A stretch of DNA of 64,000 nucleotides from Mytilus californianus (GCF_021869535.1 NW_026262679.1:117366001-117430000); one strand, 5' to 3'. Positions 28,910 to 58,730 are shown, counted from the first letter of the stretch. Notes: generated by a model not told the origin, from the sequence alone. Numbers and translations are program-made.

Positions 28910-29481
28910 GTTTCAACGGCTTTAGACTGGTCAAAGTTCTGGTTTGTGTCATATTAAGGTATATAGGAAATTTATTTTCAGACACGTGCCTGTGGAGCTT
29001 ACTCTAAATTTAGTTAACAACCTTCTTTCATTTTCATTAACACAACTTACATATTTTTTAATTTGAAAATGTTTTTAAATTTAAGATATGTTCTTAACTT
29101 GTTCTCAACTTTGGAATGTTTTGTTTTATCATTTCAAGCCTTTTTAACAAAATTAGGTTATATAGTTTTAGAGAACTTTTTACTTTTTTTATAATTATGC
29201 CCTTGAAGAGGAGATTATCTTAAAACAAATGAATAATTGATTTGAATGTTTTCTTTATCGTACTAAATGACTTATTTTCACTGGTTAAAAATTATAAATA
29301 AAATGACACATCACGTATATTTGATCTTTAAAAATCTTGTAAAATTAGAAAATGTTTGTTATACAAATCTAATAACCTCAAACTATCGCTGGAGGGCGCA
29401 AGGATACGTCGATGAACAAATTAGTGTGTATAATGGAAATTGTTATATTTTGTATTATTTTTGTTCAGTTTTCCTGTGCAG

Positions 29482-29575
29482 TTTATGTCCAGACACAATA
29501 CGGATGGGTACGGGGAGTACGATCGAATGATGCGATCTCTTTTTACGGAATTCCATATGCACAACAACCTAGACG
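29482..29575 (+). CDS. Carboxylesterase-like exon (YVQTQYG...[10 protein letters not shown])
   Basis: ttttcctgtgcag acceptor; donor gtaaga; phases 1/2. Confidence 0.9.
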
Positions 29576-32500: not shown

Positions 32501-35500
32501 AAATCAATCTTTATTTTTATCATGTCCTAAGTAAAATATTCCGTTTTCAACAGGCCAATTCTTGACTAGACAAAACAAACAAGCAACATTACATTACACT
32601 TTAATTAACATAAAACTCGTTGTCGAACATAAGGATACAACTTAAACGTACATTATGAACCAAGAGTTATCTTACAAACAATGGTATAACATATTCCTAA
32701 GTCAGATATCTAACGAATAATATTACGAACATGAGATACCAAGAATTGTCTACTATTTGAGAATTTCGGAAATACAAAAAATTACTGAAACTGAAATATT
32801 CAAGCTACAAATTAAAAAACCTATATCCATTATTACTTGTAAAATTCCGGAAACATACTCATACACATTTTTTATAGCGAAGAGGCGATACAACTGTATA
32901 GTCATATATATCCCGAAAGGAAAGAATGCATTTAAATTGCAATCTAAATGACATTGAGTATGAGTAACATTTCTTATTCAAATGTAAACAGATTCATTTT
33001 TACTGAACTCACGATGAGGATTAAAAGTATATGCTTATTTAATAAAAATAAGTATATTTTACCCGAGTTAATATTAAGGTGGTACCAAACACCTTGACTA
33101 AAATTGATTTGGCTCGTTTAATTTTCATAAAATTTTGACAAAATATTTACTTTGACCCTTTAACAAAAATATAAAAAATTCAAAAAACTTGAACCACACA
33201 CTTTATTGGATAAATAGCAGTTTGACAAACACTAATTTTGTTCATTGAGAAGCTAAATAATTCCAATAAAACGTGATTAAAACGTTCAGCTGATTTTTAA
33301 AGAGTTATATCCCTGTAGTGTAATGTACCACCTTAATTTGATGATATTATTTTCTCTTGTAGATGGGCGCATGCTATACACCCTATTCCGTGGGGCGGAG
33401 TTCTAAATGCCACCAAACCACGACCGATGTGTCTACAGCCACCATGTGGTAGATTAGATCCTCCTGGGATGTGCCAAGAAAATGTTAGTATTGGTCACAC
33501 CCGATCTTAAAGATTGTATGTTTTACGTCAACAAATAATTAAAAAGCAAAAACAAACACAGAATATACACTTAAACACGAACAGCACCAATGAAACACAT
33601 GAACATATAACAAAATTAAATGTCTGACACAGTACATAATCAAAAGTTACACGACCTGCTTATCTTTTACATTACACATTTTCTGAAGAATCACTCACAT
33701 TTTTTCTTCAGATGTCGGAAAACTGTCATTTTGTGAATGTATTTGTGCCGTTGAATACCAGACAAGGAAATAGAAAGACGGTGATGGTATTTATACATGG
33801 TGGAGATTTTCAGTCCATGTCTGGTGGTGCTCCTGCATTTAATGGGGAATATTTTGTCAATAAAGGAGATGTTATATTGGTAACGTTTAATTACAGATTA
33901 GGTTAGTAATATATTATTTCTATAATGTATTCTGTTGCATTTCAAAACATTTGGTATCAGCAGAAAACAATATCTAACACATCTGCATTCAGAGTGACAG
34001 AAGACATTTTAGCTCGATCACCCACAGGGACTCGGTTAGCAGATTAAAATTTTGTTAAACAATGTTTTTTAATTTTTTTTTTAATTATTTCCTGTCTATT
34101 TGTATTACTTTATTAACGTATTTGACCCTAGGATTTTTCAGTATAGGGATATGGATAGTAAACTGCACATTGCTAGAAAACAAAGAAATAGTGATGTCAA
34201 CGTCAAATACGTTAATAAAGTAATAATACAAATAGACAGGAAATAATAAAAAAAAAAATAAAAAAACATTGTTTAACAAAATTTTAATCTGCTAACCGAG
34301 TCCCTGTGGATCACCCTGTCTAAAAAGCTACTAGTATTTGAGCTTTTGCAATCACTCTGGGGTCCGTCGTTGTCCGGTGTACGGTTTTTGTCGTAAACTT
34401 TTCCAAAGGTCTTCTCATTTGAAACTTCTCTACAAATTTCAACCAAACTTGGCCTGAATGATTCGTAGGATATCTAGTATAAAGTTTGTGTTTCGGTAAG
34501 TCAATAAAAATGGACGTAATGGACAAAAATAGAACATAAAAAGGGAGGTGAAATGCATCAATTGTCTTATATCTTGAAAACTTTAATTAATAGAGAAATC
34601 TGGCATGTAGATAATGATCAAAATGTCAAGCTCTGTCAACTTATTATTTTCACCCAAATTATCAGATGTCTCCCTAATGAGTTTTTGTGATTTAATTTGT
34701 AAAGAGTTATTGCACTTAAATGACGAATTTTGACTAAATTTAGAGATTTTGTCTATTGTCTAAAAAGTACTATTATAGATAAGTAACCGTACGATCTTCA
34801 GCAATGAACAAAACCCATACCGTATAGAAAGCTACAAAAGGCCCGACATGACAAAATATTTCAAACGAGTAAACCAACGACATGGCCTGATTTATGTACA
34901 AAACAATAATCGAAAAACAATTATGATAGAAAGACCAACCACAACTACAACAACAGAATTACATGATCATAACTTGGAACAGACACATTTAGAATGTCGC
35001 CGAGTTAAACAGCAGCAGTTAAACATGTTTCCGACCTCGCAAACCTCCCCGAACCTTAGAGAGTGGAATCAAACTTATCAATCTAATCAAAATTAAATCC
35101 TTTAATTGCTTCCGTTCTGGTAAGATGCTCGACATATCAGAACGGGAGCAATTAAAGGATCTAATTTTAATGATATTGCACACCTATCATATTGTGTTGG
35201 CTTGCTGTCTGTTTAACATGTACCGCTCATCTTCCTTCATTCCTATTTAACATAACTGTTAAATAACACAATGGTATAAAATCTAAAGAATTCGTGATAA
35301 ATTACAAAAAAAAAAATTGTTCACAGTACAATTGTTCAGGTAAATAGGTAACATTTTACAATACAATTAATCATATATCAATCAAAATGTAACACATTGC
35401 TAATTAATATATCTTATTCATATTTGTTGTTATCAAATTTTTGGGTCATACATTACACGAAATTGTATTTTTTTGTAATTATGATAACGTTAAGTACATA

Positions 35501-38500
35501 TTAAGAAATATTGAAATGCTATATTTTGCAAGGATAGGATTGAGTCTTTATTGAACACTATGTTGACCGTACTTGGGATCAAATGCCCAATCAAACACTG
35601 AAACTGGTCAACATACTCATTCCATAGAATCCCACGTATGTAGGTCAATTAAGAATTCAGAATCAAACCATGTTAAGCCAAAATAAGTTCAAGGAAGTAA
35701 TCAATCTGTTTCCTGACGTGTGAGGTGTAGGTCCTTGTATCATATGAATATAAAAGTCTTGCACACACTGTAGGCACGTTCACTAGAACAGGTCACCATA
35801 GCCCAATCAAAGACAGAGAGACAAGAAATAAGGTATGTTATACATGGTGAATTTGTCTTTGGTGAACATGCCACCACAGCCAAATCAAAGGCAAAGAGAC
35901 AAAAAACAAAACCTGTAATACATGGTGACTTTGTCTTTGGTGAACATACCACCACAGCCCAATCAAAGACAAAGAGACAAAAAACAAGACCTGTATAATA
36001 TATGGTGACTTTGTCTTTGGTGAACATGCAACCACAGCCCAATCAAAGGCGGAGAGACAAGAAACAAGACATGTAAACATGCCACCATAGCCCTAGCCAG
36101 AATCGAAATAGTTATCACTTGCAAGACATTTCTTTGTTTTGACATTGTTAGACTTGTCATATGAAACAAAAGTCATTTCTGGTTGCGAGAAAATGTAACG
36201 TTATTTAAGATATACGTCAACAGAGCTAAAAGTAACGGGACAAATGGCCATTACGTTGGAAATTTATACTTCCAAACTCAAAGCAACGACTCATTCGACT
36301 GGAAATATTATTACATCAACGGCAGAATGGATGTGGAAACCCGTTTGGGTTTAATCAACACATGTAAAATATAGGACACAATCGGATAAATTACAGATCG
36401 GACGACTAGGTTATCACAGTCCTAGATACTTAGATAATTACACGAGAGATACTCTCTTACATCTGTAGAACAAAGAGATGTGAGAGTTTTCATGGCGAAA
36501 TACAAATACTAGTACATGAAAGATGACATCTGCAGAACAAAGAGGTGTGAGAGTTCACATGGCGAAATACAAATACATGAAAGATGACATCTGCAGAACA
36601 AAGAGTTGTGAGAGTCAAGATGTGGAGATACGATAACAATAGATATACAATGACATCTGTAGAATAAGGAGGTTACAATGTGGAAATTCATTCACATGAG
36701 ATATACACTGCGACATCTGTAGAACAAAGAGTTATTAGAGTTCGTATGTGGAAATACAATTAAATGAGACACACACTGTTATGTCTGTAGAACAAAGAGA
36801 CAAAGACTCCTGGTGTGAAAATACAATTTACATAGATGACACACTGCAGTATATACTAGTATAGAAAAAAAAGAATGTTAGAGTGCTTTTGTTGAAATAC
36901 AATAACATGAAAGATGCATTGCCACATATAATAAAATAGAGAATGGAAATGGGGAACGTGTCAAAGAGACAACAACCCGACCATAGAGCAGACAATATGT
37001 ATAGATAAGAGATGTGAGAGTCCTGATGTGGAAAAACAATTATATAGAGAGATACACCGTTGTAGAACATAGAACTACATGAGAGAAATAGTATGACATC
37101 TATAGAAAAACAAATCATCAAAGATACCAGGCTTATAATCTATAACGCTATACGACGCGTTTCTTCTACATACGACTCGTCAATGGCGCACGAGTTAAGA
37201 CAATTTAAAACAGCTGGAAGGCCAAATCAAATAAGAGGTTGAAGAGTAACAAAAACAAAAATTCCGAAAATGTGTGCCAAATATGGTTAATGCAATGTAA
37301 TCATAGGTAGATCAACCTTAGTATTTCGAGTGATTCAACATTTTATGAACAGTAAATTACAGAAAATGACACAACACAAACGTGCTGACTACTAGGCTGG
37401 TGATACCCTCTGAAACGAAACGTCCACCAGCAGTGATTTCGACCCAGTGGTTGTAAAAAACTAATCAAAGATACCAGGCTTATGTTTGTTACGTCAGACG
37501 CGCGCTTCGTCTACATCAGACTCATCAGTGGCGCTTTTTTCGTCAGAAAACAGTTGGAAGGCCAAACCAAAGACGAGGAATGAAGAGCAATACTGAAAAC
37601 CGATATTAAATTCATAAAACTCCGAAAAATTGTGCCAAATATGCAATAAGAACAAAAAGGTGTGAGGTACAATTACATAAGAGTAATGCTGTGAAATATG
37701 CAGAACAAAGAGGTGTGAAGAAATGCAAAAAAGACATGGGAAATACATTGCGACATCTATAGAACAACGAGGAGTGTGAGTCTTGATGTGGATATAAAAT
37801 GGTATGAGAGATATACACATACATTTGCAGAGATATGTGAGGGTGAAGATGTTGAGATATACAATTGTCGCAGAGACATTTTGTGACAACTGTAGAATAA
37901 AGAGGTATGAGACTACTGATTTGAAAATGTCATTACATGAAAGATACACTGTCACACCTCTAGAACAAGAATAAGTGTTCTAATGTGGAAATTCAATTCT
38001 AAGAAAGCTAGATAATACGATCTGTGCGAGTATTACTTTGACACGCCCTTTTCTTTAATGATATACAACTGTGAAACAAAGAACAATGAAAGGGATATAA
38101 ACCGTAGCACTTAAAAACGGAAGAATAATAAAGTGAAAAAAAACCATTAAATTACGGATTTACAACTACAGACAAGTATATCCTTTAGATTTTATTTAAT
38201 GGCTTTTACACTTATGAAAAAAACATTACATGTCATAGATGTTTTACAAAGAAAGCAAAAATATCAAGCAGTAAAAGTTACAATAATGGCAGGTTAATTG
38301 CAGTGAATGGGAAAACTTTAAAAAAATTGTTTTTGAAGTCTAGTTGGAAGGAGCAACCATTGTAAATTTCTGTCAATTATCTATAATAGACTTATGATGC
38401 AATGATACATATTGTAATAGTTTCAACCTTTTGGGTCTTTCCGTGTTATTTTTATTACAGAATAATCAACATTTGATAACCAGGTGTTTGAGAATAAACA

Positions 38501-41500
38501 AAAATTGCAAAAGTTATGGAGTATTTCTTTAATTATGTTATATGAGACACAGGATTTGCAATTTGTTTTAATTTCTTGTTCTCTATGTCAGACAAATCAA
38601 TCCCAGAGAGATGAAGTTTGTCTTCGTTTTTGCAAATGTTTCTTTTTCCAGATTGATCAAAAGAAGAATTAACTCATTATACAGTGATAAATATTACAAT
38701 AGTTTCAAGTTCTGTTGGATGTATCAATGATTTTAGAATTATCAACATTTTAGTACTCAGTCTGTGAGAAAAAAAAATGCAAAAAGAGAGACAGAAGATA
38801 CCAAAGAGGGAATCAAAACTCATAAGTCGATGAGAGACCGACAGAATCATGACATTAACGAAAAACGACGAGCAGTATATTCTCCACAGCATAAAAAATA
38901 AAGACTGAGCAACACGAACCACAACAAATCTGAGGATGACACCAGGTGCTTCTTGGGAGTAAGCATATGCTGCTCTTCATGTGACCCCGTCATGTTGTTC
39001 ATGGCAAGTACAAATTCGGTGTTCGGGGATGTAACAAGCGAGAAAAAGTGGACGGGAGAATGAACGTATCCGTGGTCATTTGTGACACAGATATTCCAGT
39101 TTCTTTGTCCTACAATGTATATGTTCTCCCATTTATTTGTATTGTGGTCCTGTCATGTGATGTTGTCGTTTTGGTGTTGTGTTTGACGTTGCCATTTAAG
39201 CGGGAGGTTTGGCATGCCACAAAACCAGGTTCAACCCACCATTTTTTTCTTAAAATATCCTGTACCAAGTCAGGAAAATGGCCATTGTTATATTATAGTT
39301 CGTTTCTGTGTGTGTTACATTTTAATGTTGTGTTTTTGTTGTGTCGTTGTTCTCCTCTTATATTTGATGCGTTTCCCTCAGTTTTAGTTTGTAACCCGGA
39401 TTTGTTTTTGTCTCTATCGATTTATAAGTTTCGAACAGCGGTATACTACTGTTGTTTTTATTCCATAACCACCAACAAACTCATTACTTCCGCCGTAAAA
39501 CTTCAAAAGGGACGATTTCAATTTGACCGTTAGGAATCCTTGGGGCAATACCTTTCTTGTTAGCAACAAGGAAATCATGATAGGAAACTCAGACTCTAAA
39601 CATCGTATCTACTGGGAGATATAGTCCATATGCAGGCGCTGCTGGAATGTTGTAGACATGGAAAATTCACAATTGGAAGCTGAAATCATATTTTTTCGTA
39701 AAGTTTTGTTCACGACCGACCCTCAGTATTAATTTCTAGATGTAAGTATAGATATGAGACAGCATTGACTGTATCTGTTGACCCGATGTTTGATGGAATA
39801 GATGTGATCAACATAGTAAAAAACATTCAATTATTTAGTGAGAGGACATCATCTTTATAGTGAAACGGGAAGTTAAAAGGTTTCATTTCATTCTTCCTGA
39901 GCAAAGGTTATGAGTATTTCCTTCATTCTTATAAGGTACACAGGAAATGCAAATTGTTTTCTTTTTGATCTGTCTTTCCAAACTACCATCTTTCAGGTAA
40001 AACAGAAAAGACAATTTCTGATAGTTGAAGATGATTCCCGGATTGTCTTGTTGAAGTACAGCCGTATCTGACTGGAACTGATTTACTGTGTGTTTTGATT
40101 TAACGACACATAGTTTAGAAAGGCAATACGGTGGATTTGCTTGTGCTTTCTGTAGCTGTACCATGATATTTCACAGGACCGTAACTACATTAAGGCAAAT
40201 GAGGCAAATGCCTCATGTTGGAAATTAAAAAAAAAAATAAGTTGACACAAATGCTTGTCTTCATATCAAATTGTTTCACGGTGAGTGTCTTGCAAGAAGC
40301 AAGTTGTGTTCACCCTCTGACATCGCCCCTGTTTTTTCGGGATCCATGTTTCACATTTATTTTTAGTTTTCAGTGTTGATTGTTTGTCGTTATGTGTCTA
40401 ATATCTGTTCCCAAGGTTGTCTTTTGTTCATTGGTTGCTTTTCTTTATGACTATTCTCCTAGTGTTGAATTACATTTGTAAATTAGTCATTTTGTTTTAA
40501 ACTTTTAAACTTGAGATTTATTATAATTCAGGACCTTTTGTCTAATTTTAAAAACTACTTTAAATTGTAAAAATATTTGAAATTAGCTCTCGCTTTTTTG
40601 TTCTATGTTCTATGTCGGCGTTAAGCGAACACCAATCAATCGACCTTGATGACTATGGCTTCAGTTGTCTAATATTCCTTGTTGTGAACGTTCATTCTCT
40701 GCTTTGCGTAGATTTAAGACTTGGGAAATATCTACAATGACCCGTGAACGGTGATGTGTGGTTTGGCAATGTTACATGCCCACCGATGTCCAGATAGTGT
40801 TTGAGAAAATGTTTTGAGAAGATACGATGCTACCGGAAATAGAAAAAATTGTCGTGTTTTCATGGAAAATTAAACTTTATATTAAAGAATACAAAACTGG
40901 CTCTCTTTTCTGCAAATAAAACTAAAAAGCTGACATGGATTAAATTTAGACAACCCAATCTCCCGGAATCAAATCATTTAAAAAGAAAATAATGTATTGT
41001 CATATGATCTTTTACATTGCAAGGCTAAACTTGCTTTAAGCCGTGTTCAGGCCCTAAAATTGAAAATAAAGGGATATGGAGTAAATGTGCATGGGACAAA
41101 ATCGCACACAATACATAAAAAAATACGAATTATCAATGAACAGGGCTTTTATTCCTGTTCTTCATCATGACAGTCGCTGGAGGGTCTTCAACAACGAACG
41201 AATCATTCATACCCTACAACAAGGGAAACTGTTCTTAGACCTCATTGCTACATTTTTGTGCAGTTTTAATATGTATACCGGCTGATTAATGCCGGATCTG
41301 TCTGTTCTGGTCTTGTATAAGGTCAAGACTTTGGTGTAATATTTTTGTGACTTTAAGATTTATTCACAGTACAATACTTTAATTACCGCTTAAGTCGACG
41401 CTAGGGCCATCTAGACCTTGTTGTAGGGTATGAATGATTCGTTCGTTGTTGAAGACCCTCCAGCGACTGTCATGATGAAGAACAGGAATAAAAGCCCTGT

Positions 41501-44500
41501 TCATTGATAATTCGTATTTTTTATGTATTGTGTGCGATTTTGTCCCATGCACATTTACTCCATATCCCTTTATTTTCAATTTTAGGGCCTGAACACGGCT
41601 TAAAGCAAGTTTAGCCTTTCAATGTAAAAGATCATATGACAATACATTATTTTCTTTTTAAATGATTTGATTCCGGGAGATTGGGTTGTCTAAATTTAAC
41701 CCATGTCAGCTTTTTAGTTTTATTTACAGAAAAGAGAGCCAGTTTTGTAATCTTTAATATATAGTTTAATTTTCCATGAAAACACGACAATTTTTTCTAT
41801 TTCCGGTAGCATCGTATCTTCTCAAAACATTTTCTTAAACACTATCTGGACATCGGTGGGCATGTAACATTGCCAAACCACACATCACCGTTCACGGGTC
41901 ATTGCAGATCTTTCCCAAGTCTTAAATCTACGCAAAGCAGAGAATGAACGTTCACAACAAGGAATATTAGACAACTGAAGCCATAGTCATCAAGGTCGAT
42001 TGATTGGTGTTCGCTTAACGCCGACATAGAACATAGAACAAAAAAGCGAGAGCTAATTTCAAATATTTTTACAATTTAAAGTAGTTTTTAAAATTAGACA
42101 AAAGGTCCTGAATTATAATAAATCTCAAGTTTAAAACAAAATGACTAATTTACAAATGTAATTCAACACTAGGAGAATAGTCATAAAGAAAGGCAACCAA
42201 TGAACAAAAGACAACCTTGGGAACAGATATTAGACACATAACGACAAACAATCAACACTGAAAACTAAAAATAAATGTGAAACATGGATCCCGAAAAAAC
42301 AGGGGCGATGTCAGAGGGTGAACACAACTTGCTTCTTGCAAGACACTCACCGTGAAGACAAGCATTTGTGTCAACTTATTTTTTTTTTAATTTCCAACAT
42401 GAGGCATTTGCCTCATTTGCCTCAATGTAGTTACGGCCCTGGATGTGGCCTGTTGTAGCCTGAAGAGTCGGGTGTTGGCGGTTGATGATGCCTGTTGTAA
42501 CGATGAAGAGTCGGGTGTTGGCGGTTGATGTGGTCTGTTGTAACCTGAAGAGTCGGGTGTTGGCGGTTGAGGTGGCCTGTTGTAACCTGAAGAGTCGGGT
42601 GTTGGCGGTTGAGGTGGCCTGTTGTAACCATGAAGAGTCGGGTGTAGGCGGTTGATGTGGCCTGTTGTAACATGAAGAGTCGGGTGTTGGCGGTTGATGA
42701 TGCCTGTTGTAACATGAAGAGTCGGGTGTAGGCGGTTGATGTGGCCTGTTGTAACCATGAAGAGTCGGGTGTTGGCGGTTGATGTGGCCTGTTGTAACCT
42801 GAAGAGTCGGGTGTTGGCGGTTGATGATGCCTGTTGTAACATGAAGAGTCGGGTGTAGGCGGTTGATGTGGCCTGTTGTAACCTGAAGAGTCGGGTGTTG
42901 GCGGTTGATGTGGCCTGTTGTAACATGCTGCACCGTTGTCCAATAGTTTTGTAATCCCTGGTATCCTTTGTATATTTTATTTCACGAATGCCATTCATAG
43001 CCTTTCAGTGATTACTGTATTATTTCACGAATGCCATTCATGGCCTGTCAGTGATGACTGTATTATTTCACGAATGCCATTCATGGTCTGTCAGTGATTA
43101 CTGTATTATTTCACGAATGCCATTCATGGCCTGTCAGTGATAACTGTATTATTTCACGAATGCCATTCATGGTCTGTCAGTGATTACTGTATTATTTCAC
43201 GAATGCCATTCATGGCCTGTCAGTGATAACTGTATTATTTCACGAATGCCATTCATGGTCTGTCAGTGATTACTGTATTATTTCACGAATGCCATTCATG
43301 GCCTGTCAGTGATTAAATCCCTTTTGCATAGTTTCTTTGAGTGTTCTCCTCCAATTTTATAGTGTAAATTTATATTGCTTATTATAAACTATTAAAGTTG
43401 TATGTCTGACAACGCATCGGGGACCAATTACAATGTATGTATAATGCTACACGCATATGGTATATGACAACATTTGTTGTTCAAAGGAAGATAACCAAAG
43501 TTTTTGATACGGTTTATGTTTATATGTATCCGTCTCCCCGACGCTCTCTATTTTTATCTATTTGGTGTACTGTTATATTCACCCACGACGGTGCCACATG
43601 TAGAGCAGGATCTGCTTACCCTTCCGGAGCACTCGAGATCACCCTGGGTTTTTGGTGGGGGTTCGTGTTGCTCAGTCTTTAGTTTTCTATGTTGTGTTTT
43701 GTGTACTATTGTTTGTCTTTTGATCTTTTTATTTTTTCCAATGGCGTTGTCAGTTTATTTCGTCTTATGATTTTGAATGTCCCTTTGATATCTTCGACCT
43801 ATCTTGACGTACTGTCATGGATTAAAGCACTCAATACAAAGAGTGTATTGTACTGTTTATTTACCATATGTACTATAGTTTATGGAGAGTCGTTGATCAC
43901 AATTGTATATCTTTATCGTTAAGAAGTATTCGGATTTATAGTTGCAGAGGAATTTACATTTTTATTTCTAGTTACAGGCGAAATGTCATTCAGACTTATA
44001 ATTACAGAGGAATCGATTCTATATTAGGCATATTTCTGTTTTAAAGAAGTGTCAGGATTTCTAGTTGAAAATAAATTATGATTTTTACTTTTTAAAGGAG
44101 TATTAGGATTTCTAGTTACGGAGGAAGTGACGGGCAACTACGGTATAACAGACCAGAGACTGGCGTTACAGTGGGTACAAAACAATATAGGCAGATTCGG
44201 AGGCGATAGAAGAAATGTATGTTATCTCTTAAACAAAGGTTGAAACAACAAAAGGAACAAACACAAATTGTTCGCCAAAAATAAAAACTATGGTTTATTT
44301 AAAATTAAAGAAATAGATAATATCAACAGTTCTTTTTTCAAAGTACAAAAACTAACACCAACACCACTAAAAAGTGTTAAAAACATACACACGTGCACGT
44401 GGTAGTCGTCGGATAATTGCGTCAGTAAGTTAAAAATGTCAGCATTCAAAATTGTTTGCATTAATATGCAAAGTGTGTAAAGTAGTTTACATAAATGACA

Positions 44501-45878
44501 ACAGTTTCTACGTATAATAATGAAATGGCAAATAAGAAAAAAAATGTTGATCGACGAGGAAATTGCATAGATAATTAGGATAATGAAAAGCAATGTATGC
44601 TGATTTTCAAGTCGTTCGATAGTTTCAACCTTTAGTTTTTATCTTTTTATTTTTTCAGCTTGTCCCTCTTACTTTAAGTACATTTCCAATCAGTTACAAT
44701 TTTCAAAAATTTTAAAAATTTTGTTGTATCGGTGAGTTACCAAGCGAGCCAACACATCTATTGGTTACTAGTACTATATTGTCACTATGTTATTTCATTG
44801 ATCTCCTGATTCATATAATTCTGCCTTCTGTATCAATGAGTTACAACTGACGACAATCAACCAGAACTCTACTGTTTTATCATTTTAGGTTACTCTCTTT
44901 GGCCATGGCGCTGGTGCAGTTTCTGTCGCAATACATATGACATCACCAAAATCTTTAGGACTCTTTCGAAATGCAATCCTTCAAAGTCTACCTTTTAGTT
45001 TACGTCTTAAGACTGTAGACCAAGCCAGGTTACAAGGACAGAATTTCTCAACAAAAGCAGGTTGTTCAGATATAGAATGTTTACGAAAAAAATCACCATG
45101 GGATATTTTAGATGCTCAAGTTAAAACGAGTTTACCTTCTGGAACCGTGTTACAACGATTACGGCCATGGGGTCCACATGTAGATGGAAACGATGTCGCA
45201 GGTGATATTCAAGCTGGCTTCCGGTTTGGCCGAGTACATGATATACCCCTTCTCATAGGGACAACAACAGCAGATGGTGCCGACATAGTCTTTAAAACCT
45301 ATCTCGAGCCATTAAATAGTGTCGCTTTTCGCACTATTCTAGCAACACTTAATCCCACTCAAGCTAGACTATCGTATACCTTATACACTCCACGATCAAA
45401 TGGCGATACTAGGCGAGAGTTAACTCAGTTTATCACAGATTTTGTTTATACGTGTCCTGCAAGAAGCTTTGCTTCTGACATGACTCGTATAAATAATACG
45501 TGGGTTTACGCTTTTGGTCGGAATATGGATTTTTTAGCCGGAAGTGGAAATTCTCCACATTGCGCGATCAGTGCGTGTCATGGTTCAGAACTTGCCTATT
45601 TATTCCAGAATATTAAGGATTTAGGATATAATTTTACAATGCCTGACATGCAACTGTCAGACGAAATCTTAATTTATTGGACTAATTTTGCTAAGCTGAA
45701 TAATCCTAACGGCAATTTAGACACGACCGAACCGGGAATGTTTAATTGGTACCAATATACAGGTATGCCGCCAGTTATTCGAGCAGTTCTTGGTATAGGG
45801 CACCCTCAGTCTTCAATCCAAACTGATTACAGGGGAAGGATTTGTAATATGTTTGGTAGTAATAACTTCAGGGCTTGA
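29482..45878 (+). CDS. Type-B carboxylesterase / cholinesterase-fold protein (crystal protein/D2-like), predicted non-catalytic; exons 29482-29575, 33363-33483, 33712-33901, 44098-44216, 44889-45878
   Basis: Phases are consistent. Motifs: [125 protein letters not shown]. No C-terminal transmembrane segment. Confidence 0.92.
30775..30965 (+). repeat. Interspersed repeat family B (gataccagg...gacgcgcgtttcgtctac...ctcatcagtgacgctc)
   Basis: Related copies at ~37113-37320, 37465-37640, 57085-57285 and 59193-59280. Confidence 0.8.
33078..33332. mobile_element. Kolobok-type (TTAA-target) MITE
   Basis: TTAA|ggtggtac ... gtaccacc|TTAA. Confidence 0.8.
33363..33483 (+). CDS. Carboxylesterase-like exon (WAHAIHP...CQEN)
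   Basis: ttttctcttgtag acceptor; donor gttagt; phases 2/0. Confidence 0.9.
33712..33901 (+). CDS. Carboxylesterase-like exon (MSENCH...HGGDF...NYRLG)
   Basis: tttttcttcag acceptor; donor gttagt; phases 0/1. Confidence 0.93.
34023..34308. mobile_element. MITE with ~47-bp perfect TIR and 7-bp TSD, inserted in the 5' end of a HINE-like element
   Basis: cacagggactcggttagcagattaaaattttgttaaacaatgttttt and its exact complement; GATCACC at 34016-34022 and 34309-34315. Confidence 0.85.
35765..36085. repeat. ~78-bp minisatellite (~4 copies)
   Basis: Unit ...ggtgactttgtctttggtgaacatgccaccacagcccaatcaaagacaaagagac...; explains ORFs 35740-36169. Confidence 0.8.
36440..37970. repeat. Degenerate ~60-bp tandem array (catctgtagaacaaagaggtgtgagag...) interrupted by families A and B
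   Basis: The motif recurs throughout 36440-37110 and 37690-37970. Confidence 0.65.
39530..39880 (-). pseudogene. Penelope-like element RT C-terminal relic
   Basis: Frameshifted minus-strand translation: [56 protein letters not shown]. Confidence 0.75.
40174..42441. repeat. Large inverted repeat (arms 40174-41223 and 41416-42441, 192-bp spacer)
   Basis: Arms are reverse complements from cagg(a/g)ccgtaactac to ctacaacaagg, with about 11 substitutions and two small indels by eye. Confidence 0.95.
42442..42925. repeat. 42-bp GC-rich minisatellite (~11.5 copies)
   Basis: Unit gatgtggcctgttgtaacctgaagagtcgggtgttggcggtt, with occasional 1-bp indels. Confidence 0.95.
42977..43315. repeat. 43-bp minisatellite (8 copies) with dimeric alternation
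   Basis: Unit atttcacgaatgccattcatgg(c/t)ctgtcagtgat(a/t)actgtatt. Confidence 0.95.
43590..43800 (+). repeat. Interspersed repeat family D (gagcaggatctgcttacccttccggagcac...gttcgtgttgctcagtc)
   Basis: Reverse-oriented relatives at ~38790-39000 and 49380-49515. Confidence 0.75.
44098..44216 (+). CDS. Carboxylesterase-like exon (VLGFLV...FGGDRRN)
   Basis: ttttaaag acceptor; donor gtatgt; phases 1/0. Confidence 0.93.
44889..45878 (+). CDS. Carboxylesterase-like last exon (VTLFGHGAG... to TGA)
   Basis: cattttag acceptor; 330 codons in frame with ORF 44937-45878. Confidence 0.93.
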   Translation, partial: VTLFGHGAGAVSVAIHMTSPKSLGLFRNAILQSLPFSLRLKTVDQARLQGQNFSTKAGCSDIECLRKKSPWDILDAQVKTSLPSGTVLQRLRPWGPHVDGNDVAGDIQAGFRFGRVHDIPLLIGTTTADGADIVFKTYLEPLNSVAFRTILATLNPTQARLSYTLYTPRSNGDTRRELTQFITDFVYTCPARSFASDMTRINNTWVYAFGRNMDFLAGSGNSPHCAISACHGSELAYLFQNIKDLGYNFTMPDMQLSDEILIYWTNFAKLNNPNGNLDTTEPGMFNWYQYTGMPPVIRAVLGIGHPQSSIQTDYRGRICNMFGSNNFRA

Positions 45879-45933: not shown

Positions 45934-45939
45934 AATAAA
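45934..45939 (+). terminator. Putative polyadenylation signal of the carboxylesterase-like gene
   Basis: AATAAA 55 nt after the stop codon. Confidence 0.5.
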
Positions 45940-47277
45940 CAATCGACAATCAGTATACTTATGCTTATATCTTTATAGGTAATGTTTGAGAAACACTGCT
46001 TCGTTAGCCTCTATCTAAATAAAAAAAAGTAAATCGCTCCTTGCAAGATATATAGTTATCCTTTCGAAGCATCTGGTGTCACTGCAGGATTTTACGGGAG
46101 TTTATTGTGTTTGTTGTTTTAAGTTGGACCACAAAATGAGAGTCAACATACTGTCTACAACAATAGACTAGTGTCTATAATATATGTCAAGTTTTAAAAA
46201 TCTTGTGAGTTTTTTTTTTTTATGTTAGTTGCTTTTAAGTGCAATAAATGCTAGTCAACATACTGTCTGCAACAATAGACTAATGTCTATATAATTTGTC
46301 CCAACTTTAAATAATCTTGGGCCAATAAAACAAAAGACTACAAGTGAATGTGAAAAAAAAAACCAATCAATGATCTGACATGAACACTAATTTCATTAAT
46401 GGGTAACCATGACAGGTCTAAGCAGCAACATTAACTAGGTTTCCGATTTGAGACAGTAAGCATATAAACATGTGGGGATAAATGTATTCAATGATGGACT
46501 TCATTTTCAAGCAAGACGCGTTTTTACAATAAAAATAAAGAGAAAACTATAACAAATAATCTAATGCGATATTCATATATTATATAGCAATAAGAAGATG
46601 TGGTATGAGTGCCAATGAGACAACTCTCCATCCAAGTCACAATGTGTAAAAAGTTAACAATTATAGGTCAAAGTACGGCCTTCAACACGGAGTCTTGGCG
46701 CACACCAAACAGCAAGCTATAAAGGGCCCCAAAATGACAAGTGTAAAATAATTCAAACAGGAAAACCAACGGTCTAATCTATATAAAAAAACGAGAAACA
46801 CTTATGAACCACATCAACAAACAAAACCACTGAACAACAGGCTCCTAACTTAGGACAGATGCAAACAAATGCAGCGGGTTTAAACGTTTTAACAGACGCC
46901 AACCTTCACCCTAACCTGAAACAGTAGTGTAACATTGCAACATAGAAAGACACAATATAAAATATCAATTGAAATGGCTTAACTCGATCAAAAAGACATA
47001 TTAGCAAACACAAGTAAACATACACTAAACGAATAAATTTGATCTATGACACAATATAAATATAATATTAATAAAAAAAGAAGGACATGTAAAACAATGT
47101 CAAAAATACAACTCTAACCTTGGTCAGAATGGCGTTTGATAAAACAACGTACACAGGTAAATTTAAATATCATCATTTTGTTTTTAGGATTTCGGAAATT
47201 TTTTTTACAAAATAAATAAATTTGTTGTTCATAGTACGAGTACAGAAGTGAAAATTTATCGTCATACTAAATACTTA

Positions 47278-47562
47278 TCAAAGGTGGAACATATTAAAAA
47301 TAGTGAGACGAGATATAACACAGAATACGAGTTTGGATATATAAACTCCATATGATGGAGCCAAAGGAACATCGCCGTCTAAAAAAGGAAAATTAACAAT
47401 ATGGAATGAAAAATCATCTCTTTTGTCGTAAATTTTAGTATGGAGTTTCCCTTTAGAATTTGAAATGTCTAAATCTAGAAAAGGACAAATACTGCTGTTT
47501 AAGTTAGATTTATTTAAAGTAAGTCCCTTTATATAGATATTTGCTTCTTTGCCTACCTCCAT
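47278..47562 (-). pseudogene. Penelope-like element RT C-terminal relic
   Basis: PFLDLDIS..KLHTKIYDKRDDFSFHIVNFPFLDGDVPLAPSYGVYIS motif. Confidence 0.8.
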
Positions 47563-48067
47563 TCAAGTTATGAGCGAATTTCAAATTACTGCATGTTTAC
47601 CTCATATTTTGTTTTTCAGTGTGCTTTTTGCAGTCCTAGTCTTGTGAATGAAGTAAATCAATCAAATGTCAGTATAGAATTACAGAATAAAACAATAAAC
47701 GTTGAATAAATATTTATAATACAAATAAGCAAGCGAAGTATTTACAAAAGAAAAAGATAAGATGCAAATTTCAATGCGTAAGATATGTGTTATCTTAGCA
47801 GTTGAAAAGAAAGAGTTTATTACTACACACACAAGAAAATTGAAAGAAGTGCTTAGTTTATTAATTAATGACACACGCATAGGAAAAGTAAAACTGTGAT
47901 GTGTAAATTCATGACACAAAATCATTATACGCCAATAAAAAGTTCAAAAGCAAAGGAACGGCTATTATATCGCTTTTCTTCGTCTCAAAGTCACTGTGAG
48001 TCCTATAATACGAGCAAAACTCTCACCACACCTCAAGTTAAAGATGGCTCCTCGTGGCGTTCTTAGC

Positions 48068-48188
48068 TACATCTATGCATTGAACCATGTTGACCATGCC
48101 ATTACATCTGTGCATTGAACCATGTCGACCACGCCATTACATCTATGCATTGAACCATGTCGACCACGCCATTACATCTATGCATTGA
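48068..48188. repeat. 35-bp tandem repeat (~3.5 copies)
   Basis: Unit tacatctatgcattgaaccatgtcgaccacgccat. Confidence 0.85.
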
Positions 48189-48819
48189 AGAACACAACTA
48201 CGTATACAAATCAATAAATCATAGATTGTATCTATATAACAAAGAAATGGATACAAATAGCAATCATTTAGAAAATTACGGAGCACGTAAAGATATATAT
48301 TAGGGGACGACCTTTGATTTAAGTTGGGGTTGCAGGACCAGGACAGGAAATTTCCTTCTTCTTCTTCTTCTTCTACTATTGGATATCCACCCTATATTAT
48401 AATAAAAGTATTCATCATAAGTTAAACTGTTAATCCTGAACAACACTCCTGTGGGCTTAAGAAAAACAGTAATTTTATGAGATGAAATAATGTATGAACA
48501 GAACAAAGTATTCGGTGGCCTGTTAAACAATTTCAACAAACTGAAAGAAAGCGATAAAACGAACAAGCACACATAATATAATTCAACCTTAGAATGAATA
48601 GGTCATAATTATGTATGACCTAGAACGAAACTTTGGAAAGGAAATATGAAAACATTTGAAAGCAGAAAACGCATTTGAACAGAACAGTCTAAACCATTCT
48701 TTGCAAGCGACTGAGCGAGTTGCAACCTTAGATTTACAAAATTTGTGTATTGCAATTGTTTTTTTTCTGGCTATTCCTACCATTTCGAATTTATAGATAA
48801 AATATTTAAAAAAGTAAAA

Positions 48820-49140
48820 TAACAAAAATACCGAACTCCAAGGAAAATTCAAATCGGAAAGTCCCTTATAAAATGACAAAATCAAAAGCTCAAACACATC
48901 AAACGAGTGGAAAACAACTGGAATATTCCTGACTTGGTACAGGCATTTCCTTATGTAGAAAATGGTGGATTAAACCTGGTTTTATAGCTAGCTAAACCTC
49001 TCACTTGTATGACAATCGCATAAAATTTCATTATTTTGACAACAATGTGTGAACAAAACAAACAGACATAATAGGTAAAAATGTCAAAAATAGGGGTACA
49101 GCAGTCAAGGTTGTGTTATAATCTTATTCACTATGTTATA
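48820..49140 (+). repeat. Interspersed repeat family C (ccgaactccaaggaaaattcaaatcggaaagtccc...)
   Basis: A shorter relative lies at ~55290-55350; this copy abuts the gypsy 5' end. Confidence 0.7.
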
Positions 49141-49148
49141 TTAAAATT

Positions 49149-50324
49149 TTGTCTTTGGCAATTCATAATTTTACTTTAACAACTGTGACCACAACAACAG
49201 CATCCATTCATTCAACTGCGTCAACACCATCAACACCGGCCGTAGTACAAGTTATAAGAGAAGTAAGTGTCAATATGCCGTCAGGGATAAATTTAAACGG
49301 TTATGATAGAAAATCATCTGCAGCACAATGGTGGGGATATTTTATCCGATGGACACTCATACAAAAAATGAATGAACAGCAAAAGAGGGACGAAAGATAC
49401 CAGAGGGACAGTCAAACTCACAGATCGAAAACAAACTGACAACGCCATGGCCAAAAATAAAAAGACAAACAGACAAATAATAGTACAGATGACACAACAT
49501 AGAAAACTAAAGACTACAGTGCAATTCATTTCTTTTTTTTCATGGTAGATGGTATACCAAAACAATGGTTTGCCACACTTACTGAAACTATACAAAATTC
49601 ATTAGCACAGAAAGGATGAATTTTTAAAAGGTTCGAAAAATCGCAAGGGTTATTTGATGTTAATATCCTACAATTAAAGCAAGGCCAAAATGAAAGAGTG
49701 GATGAATTCATGGCACGTTTACAAGAAAAAAGTATAGGACACGACATTCCAGATAATATAAAAATAGGGATTGCCATACAAGGTTTTAGAGGGGAGATAG
49801 GGAAAACAGTCCATAACACTTTCCCAAAGCCTACAACATTAGACCAATTAAGAGAAATTGCAGAAAACGCAGAAAAATTAGAGCAACTAGCACCAGCATC
49901 CTCCATTACTGCCGACACAATTGCAGCTATATTAGAAACCAAAATGCAAAGTCCTTTAGAAGAAATTAGAAGACTCCATACTTCGATATGGACAAGACCA
50001 AATCGGCCTCCACAAAACAAAATCCGGTACAACAATCCAAGACATAACAACCAACAAGGAACTGTGATTCAACAACAACCTGCCTTTGTACCTCAGCAAC
50101 ACTACAGTCCACAAAATTATCAAGTGTATAACGGACAACAATACAGCCAGTCCATGTCAACGACAGTACAGAATCCTTATCAACAGCAACAGCAACAACA
50201 TGAGGCAGTTGACGGATCATGTCCAGATAGTGGTATGTTTTGTGGTTCTAATTGCCCAGCAAGAAATAAATTATGTTATCAATATAATAAGATAGGGAAT
50301 TATGGTCGTAAATGCAGAAGATAA
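49149..50324 (+). pseudogene. gypsy gag (interrupted)
   Basis: AAQWWGYFIRW, GIPKQWF, LKQGQNERVDEFMARLQ, Q-rich linker and degenerate CCHC knuckle (CYQYNKIGNYGRKC). Confidence 0.8.
49380..49515 (-). mobile_element. 136-bp family D fragment inserted in gag, ACAG duplicated
   Basis: ACAG at 49376-49379 and 49516-49519. Removing it restores ...MNEQCNSFLF.MVDGIPKQWF with one homopolymer frameshift. Confidence 0.7.
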
Positions 50325-50441
50325 CAAACATCTGGTCAAAACCCTCCTCACTTTTAGGGATTCGCGCCTATCCCTAGGCATTTGTCAAAGGATAGGTACA
50401 GAGGTAGAAATTCTTTTGCAGAGGTAAATTTGGTATAACCA

Positions 50442-53400
50442 ATGCAGACAAATACTTCAATTGTTGATATCAATGGCAGAAAAACACATGCATTGATTGA
50501 TACTGATGCAGAAATCAATTGCTGTAGCTTTGATTTTTATAGCAAGTTAGTCCTTTCTGACAAACTGTCTAAATCAGATATTACATCAATTAAAGGTGTA
50601 AGTGAACATAGGTTACAAGTGCTAGGAAAAGTTAATCTACCTATTTCATTTAAAGGTTCTGTTTTTAATTATCATGTTTATATCATAGATGGGATACATC
50701 ATTCTTTTATAGTTGGTTGGGATTTTTTACATGAGAATAAGATTAATATTGATTTTTCTAGAAGTGTTTTACAGGTACCAGATAAAGAAAATGCAGATAT
50801 ACCCAAAGTATGTATGATACAGACTACTAGTACTGGTTTTGCTAGATCATATTTTCCTGTCACTATTTCTCCATTTTGTGAAATGAATGTTGGTGTCAAA
50901 ATTTCTAAAAAAAATTCAGGAGAAATGGTTCGTTTAGAACCATTTAGTAATTTAGTGGATTACAATCTTACGAGTGCTAAATGTTTGATCAAAATTAATA
51001 AGAATCCTACAAATCAGGAAATACACATTCCCGCAACAAAAGTGCTAGCTTCTGTATCAGACATTGACTTGCATTTTATTCATAATTTAGGTGATAACGA
51101 GCCATCTGTAGCTAGTTTACAGCAAACTAATCAAGTCAAGGAGCCTATTAAGGTTGATTTCAGCAGTTCTGATTTAACTTCTGAGCAGAGACAGAAAGTG
51201 CAGACATTTCTTAGTTCTTATAGAGATATTTCTGCTACTAATTTATCGGAATTAGGTTTTACAAACAGGTACAAGTACATAATTGAAACTTTCAGGGATG
51301 CTAGACCATTAAAAATGGGATTCTATAACCAGTCTCCACATATGCACAAAGAAACAGAAAAACATTTGGTAGAAATGAAGAAAAAACAACATTATAAAAG
51401 AATCAGCCAGTGAGTATCATTCACCTGTAATATTAGTGAAGAAGAAAACTACACCTGGTCAGCCTCAGCAGTATAGATTTTGTGTAGAATTTAGAAAATT
51501 AAATTTCCAGACAAAAAGTTCTTCCTTTCCGATCGCACGTCTAGAAAATATATTTGACACAATTGGTGAAGTGCAGCCTCAAATTCTAAGTTGTCTCGAC
51601 CTTCGCAGTGGTTTTTTGCAAGTCGAAATGGATGAGGAAACAAGACATAAATCTGCTTTTATTACTCGCAATGGTGTCTATGAATTTCTTAGAATGCCTT
51701 TTGGTCTTAAAAATGCTCCTATTAGTTTTCAGCAGCCCATGTCTAATGTTTTACGTGGACTTAATTGGCAATTTGTTTTAGTTTATGTGAATGATATTTT
51801 GGTATTTAGTAGGAGTTTTGATGAGCATCTTTCGCATCTAGAACAAGTTTTCACTCGTCTTCGTGATGCAAATCTCACATTGAAACTATCCAAATGTGTG
51901 TTTGCAGCAAAAGAGGTGAAATACTTAGGTCACATCATTTCAAAGGAAAGCATTAAGGTTGATCCTGAAAAGACAAAAACAGGTTCGCTCATTTTTTTGG
52001 AAATGTGCAATTATTATCGACGTTTTGTTGATCCATATTCAAAAATTGCCACTCCTTTGAATGGGTTGTTATAGAAGGAAGAAGAACGAAATTTCAAATA
52101 GAATAAGGAATGTCAAGTAGCTTTTGACAATTTAAAACATGCTTTATTAACACCTCCTGTCCTGGCTTACCCTGACATGAATAAACCCTTTATAGAAAAT
52201 GAAAGGATATGGAGTAAATGTACATGGGACAAAATCGCACACAATACATAGAAAACATAGAAAATTATCAATGAACAGGGCTTTTATTCCTGTTCTTCAT
52301 CTTGACAGTTGATGTAGGGTCTTCAACAACGAACGAATCATTCATACCCTACAACAAGGTCAAGACGGCCCCTAGCGTCGACTTAAGCGGTACTATTGAT
52401 AAAAATAAACCACAGTTCACCTTTTTGCTCCCCACCCGCCTCGGAGTGCCAACTTGTTCGATGCTTGTGTACGACGGTTCTCCATTAGAAAGAACCAGGG
52501 ATACAAGAAAAGTGCAGTAATTTTGAAAGACATCGATCGCCGCTAAAATATGCCTTGAAGTTACACATGTCGGGAGCGGTCAATGAATTACATAATTTAT
52601 AATTACGGGCGAGGTTTTTCAACATATATTTGTCATACATTGCCCAACAAAAGACCAATAATTTCGAAACAACAAATGATAGACAATACATATAAAACTA
52701 AAAAACAAATGATAGACAGCACAGGGCACATCGAAATATATGTAAGTAAACCTAGCAGTTTAAAATAGTATGAAAGGGCAATATACAAAACAGATGACCA
52801 GACGAAATTTAACCAAACATGAAATTTTGAGGGTGTATAAATATGAGAAATTCTCACATGAACACGCACACCATAACTGTAAATATTATAAGAGCATATG
52901 TTGACGTGTGATGCTTCAAATTCAGCTAGATAGTCAGAGAAAGGAACGTGTAATTGCTTTTGGTGGTAAAAATTTATCTAAAACAGTACAAGCTTGGAGT
53001 ACAACTGAAAAAGAATGTTATGCAGGAGTTCATGGTGTAAAAAACATTTAACACTCATCTTGATACTGGGATATTCACTACTTATACTGATCACACAGCT
53101 TTGACATATCTCATGAATCAGAAGGCAAATACAGGTAAACTAACAAGAGGAGCAATGGATTTGCAGCATTATAATTTTGAGGTTAAGTATAGAAAAGGTT
53201 GTAACAATCAAGTAGCTGATGCTCTCAGTAGACGCTCATATCCTGAACAGCCTGACGATGAAAATGAAGTTGCAGCTGTAAAGGTATCTAAAGTGAATAC
53301 TAGAACAGAAGCTATTGGGAAGAATAGGACTTCTGAGAGTATCCAAGTGGAATTCTTGTATGATGATTACGCTATGGTTGTTCCATTAGACCCGGTTATT

Positions 53401-54960
53401 GTCAGACCAGAATTGTCAAACCTTCGTGCTATTGCAAATTTGCAACAAAGTTGTCCTGATTATGGAAATATGCACAGATTCCTTACTGAAGGTATTCTAC
53501 CTGCAGACAATGATCAGAGTTCAAAGGTTCAAAAATCGGCTCAAGATTATTCCATTTGTAACAATGTTCTGTATAAATGGTTTCAGAAGAGAGTCAGAGT
53601 TGGTAATGGTGAAAAGTAGATAAAACAGTTATGTCTCCCACAAGCTCAAAGAGAAGTTATCATGACAGTTTCGTAGATTGTGCACATCTTGGGATTGAAC
53701 GTGTTTATCATGCTTCGAGTCTTAAGTACTTTTGGCCTGAAATGCATCAAAGCATTGAAAACTACATTCGATCATGTGATCGCTGTCAGAGAATAAAAAG
53801 AGATACATAGGGTAAGAAACCACCTCTTAATTTTCTGCCAGTTGACACAACCTTTGAAAGATGGCATATGGATTTTCTGAAACTTAGTAAGAATAATGAG
53901 GGTTATTCTTATGTTTTATTATTGGTAGATTCTTTTTCAAAATGGAGTGAGGCCTTTCCTATGAAAACTCAATAAGCTTCAGGGGTTGCAAAAGTCTTAT
54001 TTCGAGAGATTATTAGTCATTACGGAGTACGGTGCATTGAAGTGTCTAGTTACAGATCTTGGTCGAAATTTTGTCTCGAATTTGGTGAATGCTTTGTGTG
54101 AAATGTTGAATATTACAAGGCATCATACAAATTCATACATCCACAAACAAATGGCTTAGTGGAAAGGACCAATAGCACATTGATACGGGAAGTCAGAGCT
54201 TATAGTGATAAGGACCAGAACAATTGGCCAAATAAACTCCCTGGTATTTTAATGGCTTTTAGAAATTCTCAATCAACTCAATCAACAGAGTATTCTCCCT
54301 TCTCAATGGTGTTTGCCTAGGAGATGAACTTACCTTTTGACGCTTCTCTTTTGCCAAAAGACAATCTGTCAAAAAACAACATTTAGAAGAAATTATTTCA
54401 AACCTCAAAATTACCCAAGATTTGGCTGCTAAAAATGTTAAGCTTAAACAAGCAAAAATGAAAGAACGATACGACATAAATACCAAAATTCCTTAATTTA
54501 GACTTAGAGATAACGTTTTACTTAAAGAACATGCAGTCCCTGTCGGTCGTTCACCAAAATTAGTAGATAAATATAATGGTTCTTATGACATAACTGACTG
54601 TGGGTCGAATTTCACATATAAATTAAGACGCTGTAGTGACCAGAAGGAACTTAAAGCTATGGTCAATGCAAGCAATCTTAGGCAATATGTAGATCCCACT
54701 GACTACCGTGATCCGCCACAAGCTCTAGAACGTCATATTCTAGATAATGCACCTGAAGAGTAAAATGATCCACATACAGATAATGATCAGGGTCAAATTG
54801 CAGAAAATGAGAGTAAAGATTAAGAAACTAACAGTGATGATGGAGATGGACCAAACAATGTTATTGATGATACATTTCATGAGGTAGACAAACTATAAAA
54901 TATTAGAAATACAAGAGGAATACAATATTTTCTTGTGAAATGGAAAGATGGAAAAACATA
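50442..54960 (+). pseudogene. gypsy pol (protease, RT, RNase H, integrase, chromo-like tail), disrupted
   Basis: ALIDTDA (protease DTGA variant); YRFCVEFRKLN, LDLRSGFLQ, RMPFGLKNAP, VYVNDILV (RT); LTCDAS, YTDHTAL, VADALSR (RNase H); H..HLG..C..C zinc finger, WHMDFL, NGLVERTN (integrase); HEVDKL..QYFLVKWKD tail. Confidence 0.95.
52194..52896. mobile_element. 703-bp composite insertion between RT and RNase H, TAT duplicated, no TIR
   Basis: TAT at 52191-52193 and 52897-52899. Removal restores LAYPDMNKPFMLTCDAS. The first ~197 bp match the palindrome's inner arm. Confidence 0.85.
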
Positions 54961-57339: not shown

Positions 57340-57916
57340 GGTAGAAGCTGCAAGCTCTTGAATACCGAATGAGTTGGGAAATATATATCCCATATGCAGG
57401 TGAAGTTGGTATATTGCTACTAAGATGGGAGAATTGATAATTTCAAAATCAAAATCGTCTCGTTTGTCATAGATTCTGGTACTGAGATGACCGCTTATGT
57501 CAAAATTCGAGGTATAAGTCTTAAAATGAGGCGGAGGAATCCGTGTCTGTTGTTTCTTTAATTTCTAGTTCTGGAGGATATATTAATGGAACCCAATCAG
57601 AAAAGTTTGGATTGTTAATGGAAAGAACATCACCAATATATCTGAATGTGAACTTAAATGATCTGGCTTCTTTGATCTTCTTGTTCTTGACAAGTGTCTG
57701 AAGGAACTCCGACTCGTATGAAAATAAGAGATCGGCAAGGAGAGGCGCACAGTTCGTTACCATAGGAATGACGACAATTTGTTGAAAAAGTCTACCTCCA
57801 AGTTCAACAAATATGTTGTCAATAAGAAACTCCAGCATACTGATCACTTGTTCCTCTGTGTAGAATGTTTTACCTTTTTGTTCACTATTAACAAAATAAG
57901 CTGTATGGTTTCCCAA
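57340..57916 (-). pseudogene. Penelope-like element RT relic
   Basis: MLEFLIDNIFVELGGRLFQQIVVIPMVTNCAPLLADLL, FTFRYIGDVLSINN, YPPELEIKETTD, then YDKRDDFDFEI in another frame. Confidence 0.85.
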
Positions 57917-58214
57917 AGAAATTCATGTTGGAGTTCCCAGAATTATTTTGTCTACAAAGAGATTAAGTTGGATTATGTTTTAACAACGTGATTAATGAAT
58001 CAATGTAAAAACAGGTAAAATTAGTGGAAATGAAAGAGAATGATAACTTTTTATATAGAAAACCTTTTGTTTAATAATTTTAAAGCATATGGTGTTAGCA
58101 CAACTTCTATCAAATTGAATACATAGTAGTATAAAAATTATCATTAGGACATACCATCAAATTTCAGAAGCCCTTAATTGTTAAACATACAGAGAATTTA
58201 CAGTGTCTTAGTTA

Positions 58215-58730
58215 ATGTACAAGAGATGAGAAGAAGCAACAGCATACTGAATTGGAATGAGTTCTTCGTTCTGTAGTCTTGTTTTCAATGTTTCAAGTCG
58301 GTTGTCGACCTCACAATGTTTTCTTTCTTGGGAACATATTTCCCACCAGCTCTGTATTGTTTAAAGGCGCCTGCTTGGATGGCTTTATCATACTAAAGAT
58401 GTTTGGTGGGGTGCCTTGACCATTTCTTCTATTTACTCTGCGTGCCTTCCGCGTGATTTTGTGTTCTAGGACCTTCTGTTGCGTAATGGTTCCATAGGCT
58501 TTAGTTGTCTTCAATCCAGTAGCTAGTAATATAATAAGTGAAAGCAAGTTGTTTATTAGTATTGTACCATCGATATTCTCTTACCAAACATCTTCAACTG
58601 TGTTGGGTGGTAGAAGTGGTAGAACATCAGCTCTCCGAAAAAGTAGATGGATGTTGTTGTTTTCTGTCTACAAACCATGTTTTAGTGCGTTCCTCCATGC
58701 ATATCAGAGCTCAAAGTTACTTGGCTTAGC
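58215..58730 (-). pseudogene. Mutator-like (MULE) transposase C-terminal relic
   Basis: Frameshifted minus-strand translation: LFRRADVLPLLPPNTVEDVW, YITSYWIEDN*SLWNHYATEGPRTQNHAEG, PNIFSMIK, NRLETLKTRLQNEELIPIQYAVASSHLL. Confidence 0.7.

Follow-up and report, generated by a model that had tools for sequence, protein, structure and literature searches.

Within the window (the whole 64,000-nucleotide stretch of Mytilus californianus DNA analyzed here), we identified an esterase-like gene of five exons on the plus strand, extending from 29433 to 45878 with GT-AG boundaries at all introns. Exons were placed by reading their borders and by a tblastn search whose query was the nearest full-length protein in public records, a "crystal protein-like" protein of Mytilus galloprovincialis (P0001; 92.7% identical to the window product). 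The joined coding sequence comprises 1563 nt (520 codons, 0 internal stops) spread over 16.4 kb. An upstream in-frame ATG at 29412, from which models of other species start, adds seven residues (MNKLVCI), giving a product of 527 amino acids. The features of the locus are as follows.

29433..29575, plus strand: exon 1, with the start codon, predicted signal peptide residues 1-16 (MEIVIFCIIFVQFSCA) and the first strands; donor GTAAGA
33363..33483, plus strand: exon 2, residues 48-88, with the Cys71/76/85 loop; acceptor AG, donor GTTAGT
33712..33901, plus strand: exon 3, residues 89-152, carrying SENCH and HGGDF
33715-33729, plus strand: SENCH (SEDCL in relatives), in exon 3
33796-33810, plus strand: oxyanion loop HGGDF, in exon 3
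33902..44097, plus strand: intron 3, 10.2 kb, with a palindrome and two minisatellites inside
44098..44216, plus strand: exon 4, residues 152-191, from a Pfam COesterase match and splice sites
44889..45878, plus strand: exon 5, residues 192-520 and the TGA stop, from a Pfam COesterase match and alignment to PDB chains
44907..44909, plus strand: codon 198, GGC (Gly), nucleophile elbow (GHGAG), read directly and aligned to PDB chains
45273..45275, plus strand: codon 320, GAT (Asp), acid position (TTTADG), from the PDB alignment
45579..45581, plus strand: codon 422, CAT (His), triad histidine (CHGSEL), retained after conserved Cys421, from the PDB alignment
45934..45939, plus strand: AATAAA, likely polyadenylation signal, 56 nt past the stop, read from the sequence

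The interval 44889-45878, which the original prediction took for an intact gene, is a real open frame (329 codons, closing at TGA) that matches Pfam PF00135 (COesterase; E = 1.1e-41, profile positions 185-511 of 515), but it is only exon 5 of the five. A separate COesterase match lies in a 38-codon piece at 44103-44216 (E = 7e-14, profile positions 145-183); the interval therefore represents the final exon of a gene with introns. P0001, to which exons 1-3 align, is itself a PF00135 carrier. Similarly, the predicted core of ~505 codons is free of stops as stated, but its length is 520-527 codons in five exons. All tblastn matches within the 64-kb window belonged to this gene, with no second esterase copy. 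The joined coding sequence was used for translation, dN/dS, and trees, while search and folding queries were single exons or the orthologue P0001.

The window product was identical at 451 of 451 residues to the RefSeq protein XP_052102330.1 ("crystal protein-like," M. californianus). That model (451 aa) begins at Met70; the exon encoding the signal peptide and a portion of exon 2 are missing from it. Exons 1 and 2 (29412-29575 and 33363-33483) are intact in the window, and four other Mytilus species have models that include both.

We aligned the catalytic region to PDB chains with phmmer. The elbow segment aligned to VTLFGESAGAAS of butyrylcholinesterase, placing Gly198, Asp320, and His422 opposite Ser198, Glu325, and His438 of that enzyme, respectively. 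The protein thus has an acid and a histidine at the corresponding triad positions and lacks the nucleophile serine of the GxSxG elbow of type-B carboxylesterases. The in-frame reading and this alignment bear out three assignments made earlier from the sequence, namely glycine in place of the elbow serine, aspartate at the acid position, and retention of the triad histidine; the predicted change of SEDCL to SENCH is likewise present in exon 3, with SEDCL seen in relatives in the clade comparison. Gly198 and Asp320 are unusual for the family: Ser198 is invariant among 51 non-mussel sequences (alignment A1), and 92% of relatives have Glu at the acid position. With P0001 as the query, a full HMMER scan recovered ~39,000 relatives; among the best 150 of these together with the matches of the first search, 234 domains had Ser aligned to position 198 and 24 had Gly. 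The oxyanion loop HGGDF, also listed in the original prediction, is present but normal: it also occurs in Haliotis and in a number of further relatives that keep the serine, and we therefore did not count it among the clade-specific changes and ruled it out as part of the inactivation. The third position of this loop varies among relatives (N, D, E, Q, S, A, or G).

The glycine proved constant across mussels. The elbow is GQGAG in the orthologues of M. galloprovincialis, M. edulis, and M. trossulus and GHGAG in that of M. coruscus, and all four orthologues fall in the same 90% cluster as XP_052102330.1. Three species (M. californianus, M. galloprovincialis, and M. trossulus) share GGC at codon 198. 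More distant mussel-like copies carry it as well: L002 (ENA ERZ26273167; 75% identical) reads GHGAG with codon GGA, L003-5 (SRR26215654-6; 69% identical) read GQGSG, and fragment P0007 reads GHGVG. An alignment of orthologues, which had been proposed as a check, therefore shows Gly in all five Mytilus species, with no sister species carrying Ser. In M. galloprovincialis, the locus on chromosome OZ263148.1 (L001) is collinear with the window in its exons, its introns (mostly 70-87% identical), and a downstream immunoglobulin-domain gene. Three of the Mytilus orthologues (P0216, P0218, and P0219) are labeled "Juvenile hormone esterase," "cholinesterase," and "acetylcholinesterase" despite the missing catalytic serine; these are misleading transferred names.

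In a maximum-likelihood tree of 26 rows, the six rows with Gly at position 198 formed one clade (support, 100/100), nested within an orthogroup of pteriomorph bivalves (100/99) that includes ark clam, pearl oyster and oyster, and scallops. The other seven members of this orthogroup all have MSEDCL, GQSAG, and xxEG, and also ACHx. The tree thus places the Gly clade inside a catalytic, crystal-protein-like orthogroup. Its serine-bearing members are "crystal protein-like" carboxylesterases (Pinctada imbricata KAK3098566.1, Saccostrea, Mizuhopecten, Argopecten, Ylistrum, and Tegillarca) that are orthologous to the mussel protein by tree and 44-47% identical to it. They share with it a length of ~530 aa, the cysteine pattern, the HGGxF loop, and the ACHx motif, but have a Glu acid where the mussel protein has Asp, and MSEDCL and GQSAG in place of SENCH and G(H/Q)GxG. 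Among the best matches, the closest serine-bearing proteins were those of Pinctada (47% identical), Tegillarca, and Haliotis. When the Pinctada protein was used as the query, proteins of Saccostrea, Mizuhopecten, Argopecten, and Ylistrum (52-57% identical) were followed by the Mytilus protein (47%), and this search returned no serine-bearing Mytilus protein closer to the query.

Since the Gly clade is monophyletic within a serine-bearing orthogroup, a single state change suffices to account for the loss. The stem of the clade is long (0.81 changes per site, versus 0.20-0.28 for the oyster and scallop stems, i.e., three to four times longer), whereas branches inside Mytilus measure 0.005-0.14. 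The serine was therefore lost a single time, on the stem leading to mussels; a burst of change accompanied the loss, and constraint was restored afterwards. Conserved positions altered in the clade include Asp92 to Asn, Leu94 to His, Leu96 to Val, Ser198 to Gly, Glu320 to Asp, and a few others (A1 columns), and the acid Asp and SENCH arose together with the Ser198-to-Gly change.

Trees and a motif table also placed the protein among proteins named crystal protein or D2, with which it shares HGGxF and xCHG, in agreement with the crystal-protein/D2-type identity proposed earlier. The Dictyostelium crystal protein and cAMP-regulated D2 protein belong to the same broad type-B subfamily and are the source of the RefSeq name. 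A Dictyostelium relative (P0010) is ~32% identical over exon 5 and has xCHG in common with the mussel protein; however, it retains the nucleophile Ser (GESSG) and Glu. The name "crystal protein-like" is a best-hit transfer only.

Outside this lineage, glycine or other residues were seen at the nucleophile position in further relatives. A tight bacterial clade (P0017, P0018, P0020, P0024, and P0035, from Bradyrhizobium and metagenomes) has Gly there with the His kept (elbows GSGAG, GHGAG, and GNGAG) and apparently arose independently of the mussel loss. Many other invertebrate relatives among the best matches are serine-less, including P0144 (Plakobranchus ocellatus), P0159, P0189, P0062 (Macrostomum lignano), P0071 and P0170 (Parastrongyloides trichosuri), and P0106 (Lineus longissimus), with elbows such as GDGSG, GEEAG, GAEAG, GIGAG, and GHGTG, among others. 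Some of these lack the His too, and they often occur in long multidomain models resembling fused tandem arrays. These invertebrate relatives lost the serine independently.

The fold is preserved. An AlphaFold2 model of the orthologue P0001 (55-sequence alignment) reached a mean pLDDT of 91.4 and a pTM of 0.92, with residue 198 at the elbow between strand 187-197 and helix 199-209. In Foldseek searches, this model matched carboxylesterases, butyrylcholinesterase, and PNB esterase (TM, 0.84; rmsd, ~3 Å). The best structural matches, butyrylcholinesterase and bacterial para-nitrobenzyl esterase (27-30% identity), are active Ser-Glu-His hydrolases, unlike the mussel protein, which has no Ser. The cysteines are paired at the disulfide positions of the family. 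The modeled protein thus has the full cholinesterase-type alpha/beta-hydrolase fold.

The only strongly hydrophobic 19-residue window of the chain is the N terminus (peak at residues 1-19). Given this hydrophobic N terminus and the small residues at −3 and −1 before Val17, a cleaved signal peptide is likely, consistent with the secretion predicted earlier. Also as anticipated, the C terminus has no transmembrane segment: no hydrophobic segment was found in the last 80 residues (top 19-residue hydropathy, 0.56), and the chain stops ~10 residues beyond the last helix of the fold, without the transmembrane segment and tail of the neuroligin type. The mature chain would be ~56 kDa with a pI of ~9 and contains six N-glycosylation sequons, and the product is predicted to be a secreted glycoprotein.

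We estimated selection from pairwise comparisons, as had been recommended. Between the window and the M. galloprovincialis locus, dN/dS was 0.12 (dN 0.036, dS 0.30; bootstrap 0.08-0.17; Nei-Gojobori), and all pairs among four Mytilus species gave 0.06-0.15. Against the distant copies L002 and L003, synonymous sites were saturated (pS, ~0.75), with pN of 0.14-0.19. M. californianus, M. galloprovincialis, and M. trossulus each retain an uninterrupted 520-codon frame along with all eight splice sites. The gene is maintained under strong purifying selection.

Transcript data were sparse. No RNA reads for the gene were found in a 6% sample of one M. californianus RNA run. One 548-nt contig from a "mollusc metagenome" RNA library lies inside exon 5; it carries sister-species alleles and crosses no splice joint. 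The public family fragments examined were single exons with adjoining intron, with no spliced contig of any copy of the gene among them; the Logan contigs L003-5, for example, include intron sequence upstream of exon 5. We found no papers on the gene by name or accession. In a mussel atlas, carboxylesterases as a family were enriched in the digestive gland (PMC5549309).

Taken together, the evidence favors, with a probability of about 85%, an orthologue of a pteriomorph esterase that lost its serine in the mussel lineage and was kept as a functional gene for binding rather than ester hydrolysis. On this account, a pteriomorph "crystal protein-like" type-B carboxylesterase with a serine nucleophile underwent Ser198 to Gly in the mussel lineage, with Glu to Asp at the acid position and SEDCL to SENCH at the same time, and the serine-less gene has been maintained as a functional gene ever since. 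Without Ser198 no acyl-enzyme intermediate can form, and classical esterase activity is therefore unexpected; the protein is predicted not to be a classical esterase and would work by binding. The binding or adhesion role raised in the original prediction is likewise an inference. On a rough split within this explanation, we give somewhat under half of the weight to an ester-like or lipid-like small molecule held in the former active-site gorge, a slightly smaller share to the cholinesterase-like surface binding a protein partner, as in known noncatalytic relatives, and a minor share to some other role.

We considered whether the protein may still be an enzyme, of residual or different chemistry, in which His422 and Asp320 serve to activate either water or a nucleophile from outside, or the nucleophile is a residue elsewhere in the chain. 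His422, Asp320, and Cys421 are conserved in every member of the Gly clade, two of the three oxyanion-loop glycines are retained (HGGDF), and the strong purifying selection would suit such an enzyme. However, no conserved alternative nucleophile was found at or beside the elbow of the Gly-clade copies, where the flanking residues vary (H/Q at 197; A/V/S at 199), and Cys421 before the triad His is invariant across the whole subfamily, including its serine-bearing members. The kept His and acid are also weak evidence for catalysis because known noncatalytic relatives commonly keep both. We therefore regard different chemistry as unlikely. Less likely still is a decaying, unexpressed pseudogene of intact appearance. 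The lack of RNA support and the omission of exon 1 and part of exon 2 from the M. californianus RefSeq model would fit decay, as would broken copies beside intact ones in a distant lineage. In that L002 lineage, which is multicopy, a copy with in-frame stops (L002:20242-20767) lies 10 kb from the intact copy, and frameshifted copies (P0243 and P0249) occur on two other contigs of the distant mussel-like lineage. Nevertheless, a dN/dS near 1 is expected for a pseudogene, as against the 0.06-0.15 observed, and nonsynonymous differences amount to 14-19% despite synonymous saturation in the distant copies. Together with the intact frames and splice sites in three Mytilus species, these values led us to reject the pseudogene reading.

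The original prediction had also allowed that the glycine might reflect a recent allele or an error in the base, given that GGC is one transition from AGC; the esterase would then otherwise be active. In favor of this reading, the best-matching DNA datasets may be the assembly's own source sample. The possibility is nevertheless negligible: assemblies made independently for five Mytilus species, and likewise three distant copies, give Gly (as GGC or GGA), purifying selection acts on the gene, and the change falls on one old branch. Codon 198 is also covered by DNA contigs of a second M. californianus study and of a sister species, which lend weak support, with no difference at this site among those listed.

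Noncatalytic cholinesterase relatives are a well-known class, and neuroligins carry a Ser-to-Gly change at the nucleophile site. Neuroligins, gliotactin, neurotactin, glutactin, and the ChEL domain of thyroglobulin have the cholinesterase fold without a working triad and act via partner binding (PMC5943944). With Gly198, the mussel protein is, like the neuroligins, a cholinesterase-like domain without the catalytic Ser. However, neuroligins, gliotactin, and neurotactin are membrane anchored, whereas the mussel protein has no transmembrane segment; secreted glutactin is the nearest to it in architecture. Neuroligin-2 chains match exon 5 at E of ~8e-17, and PDB cholinesterases score higher (phmmer). 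The missing anchor argues against membership in the neuroligins, as do the nearest kin, which are catalytic crystal-protein-like esterases in trees built without neuroligins. This kinship suggests an independent, mussel-specific loss, and these comparisons point to an origin independent of the neuroligin clade.

Each independent serine loss shows an enzyme fold reused for another job, and the mussel gene offers a clean case: the bivalve orthogroup is catalytic apart from this one loss, the searches found no serine-bearing co-orthologue in Mytilus, and purifying selection has acted for a long time since. Esterase and cholinesterase genes of mussels serve as pollution biomarkers; scoring this serine-less gene as an active esterase would therefore probably be wrong. 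A more specific and rather speculative version, which we consider improbable as it stands, is that a detoxifying secreted esterase turned into a nonhydrolyzing trap or carrier that holds ester-type dietary or environmental compounds in the old gorge, with ligands such as algal toxin esters or organophosphate-like xenobiotics. If so, mussels would have a sequestration protein of their own, with a bearing on the tolerance and accumulation of such compounds by filter feeders, and the burst on the stem followed by tight constraint would mark the change of job.

The noncoding parts of the locus differ between the two collinear species in several respects. M. galloprovincialis lacks a counterpart of ~13 kb between the esterase-like and immunoglobulin-domain genes (46317-59468 in the window versus 26762-26956 in L001); this noncollinear stretch downstream of the esterase-like gene probably represents repeat insertions. 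Intron 3 of the window contains a near-perfect palindrome at 40275-42356 with nested inverted arms of 230 nt (100% complementary), 644 nt (97%), and 107 nt (100%), and ~5 kb around it are absent from the M. galloprovincialis intron. The same intron holds two minisatellites, at 42442-42924 (42-nt unit, 11.4 copies, 92% matches) and 42977-43315 (43-nt unit, 7.9 copies, 95% matches). Both are without a counterpart in M. galloprovincialis, and both yield long spurious open reading frames on the minus strand.
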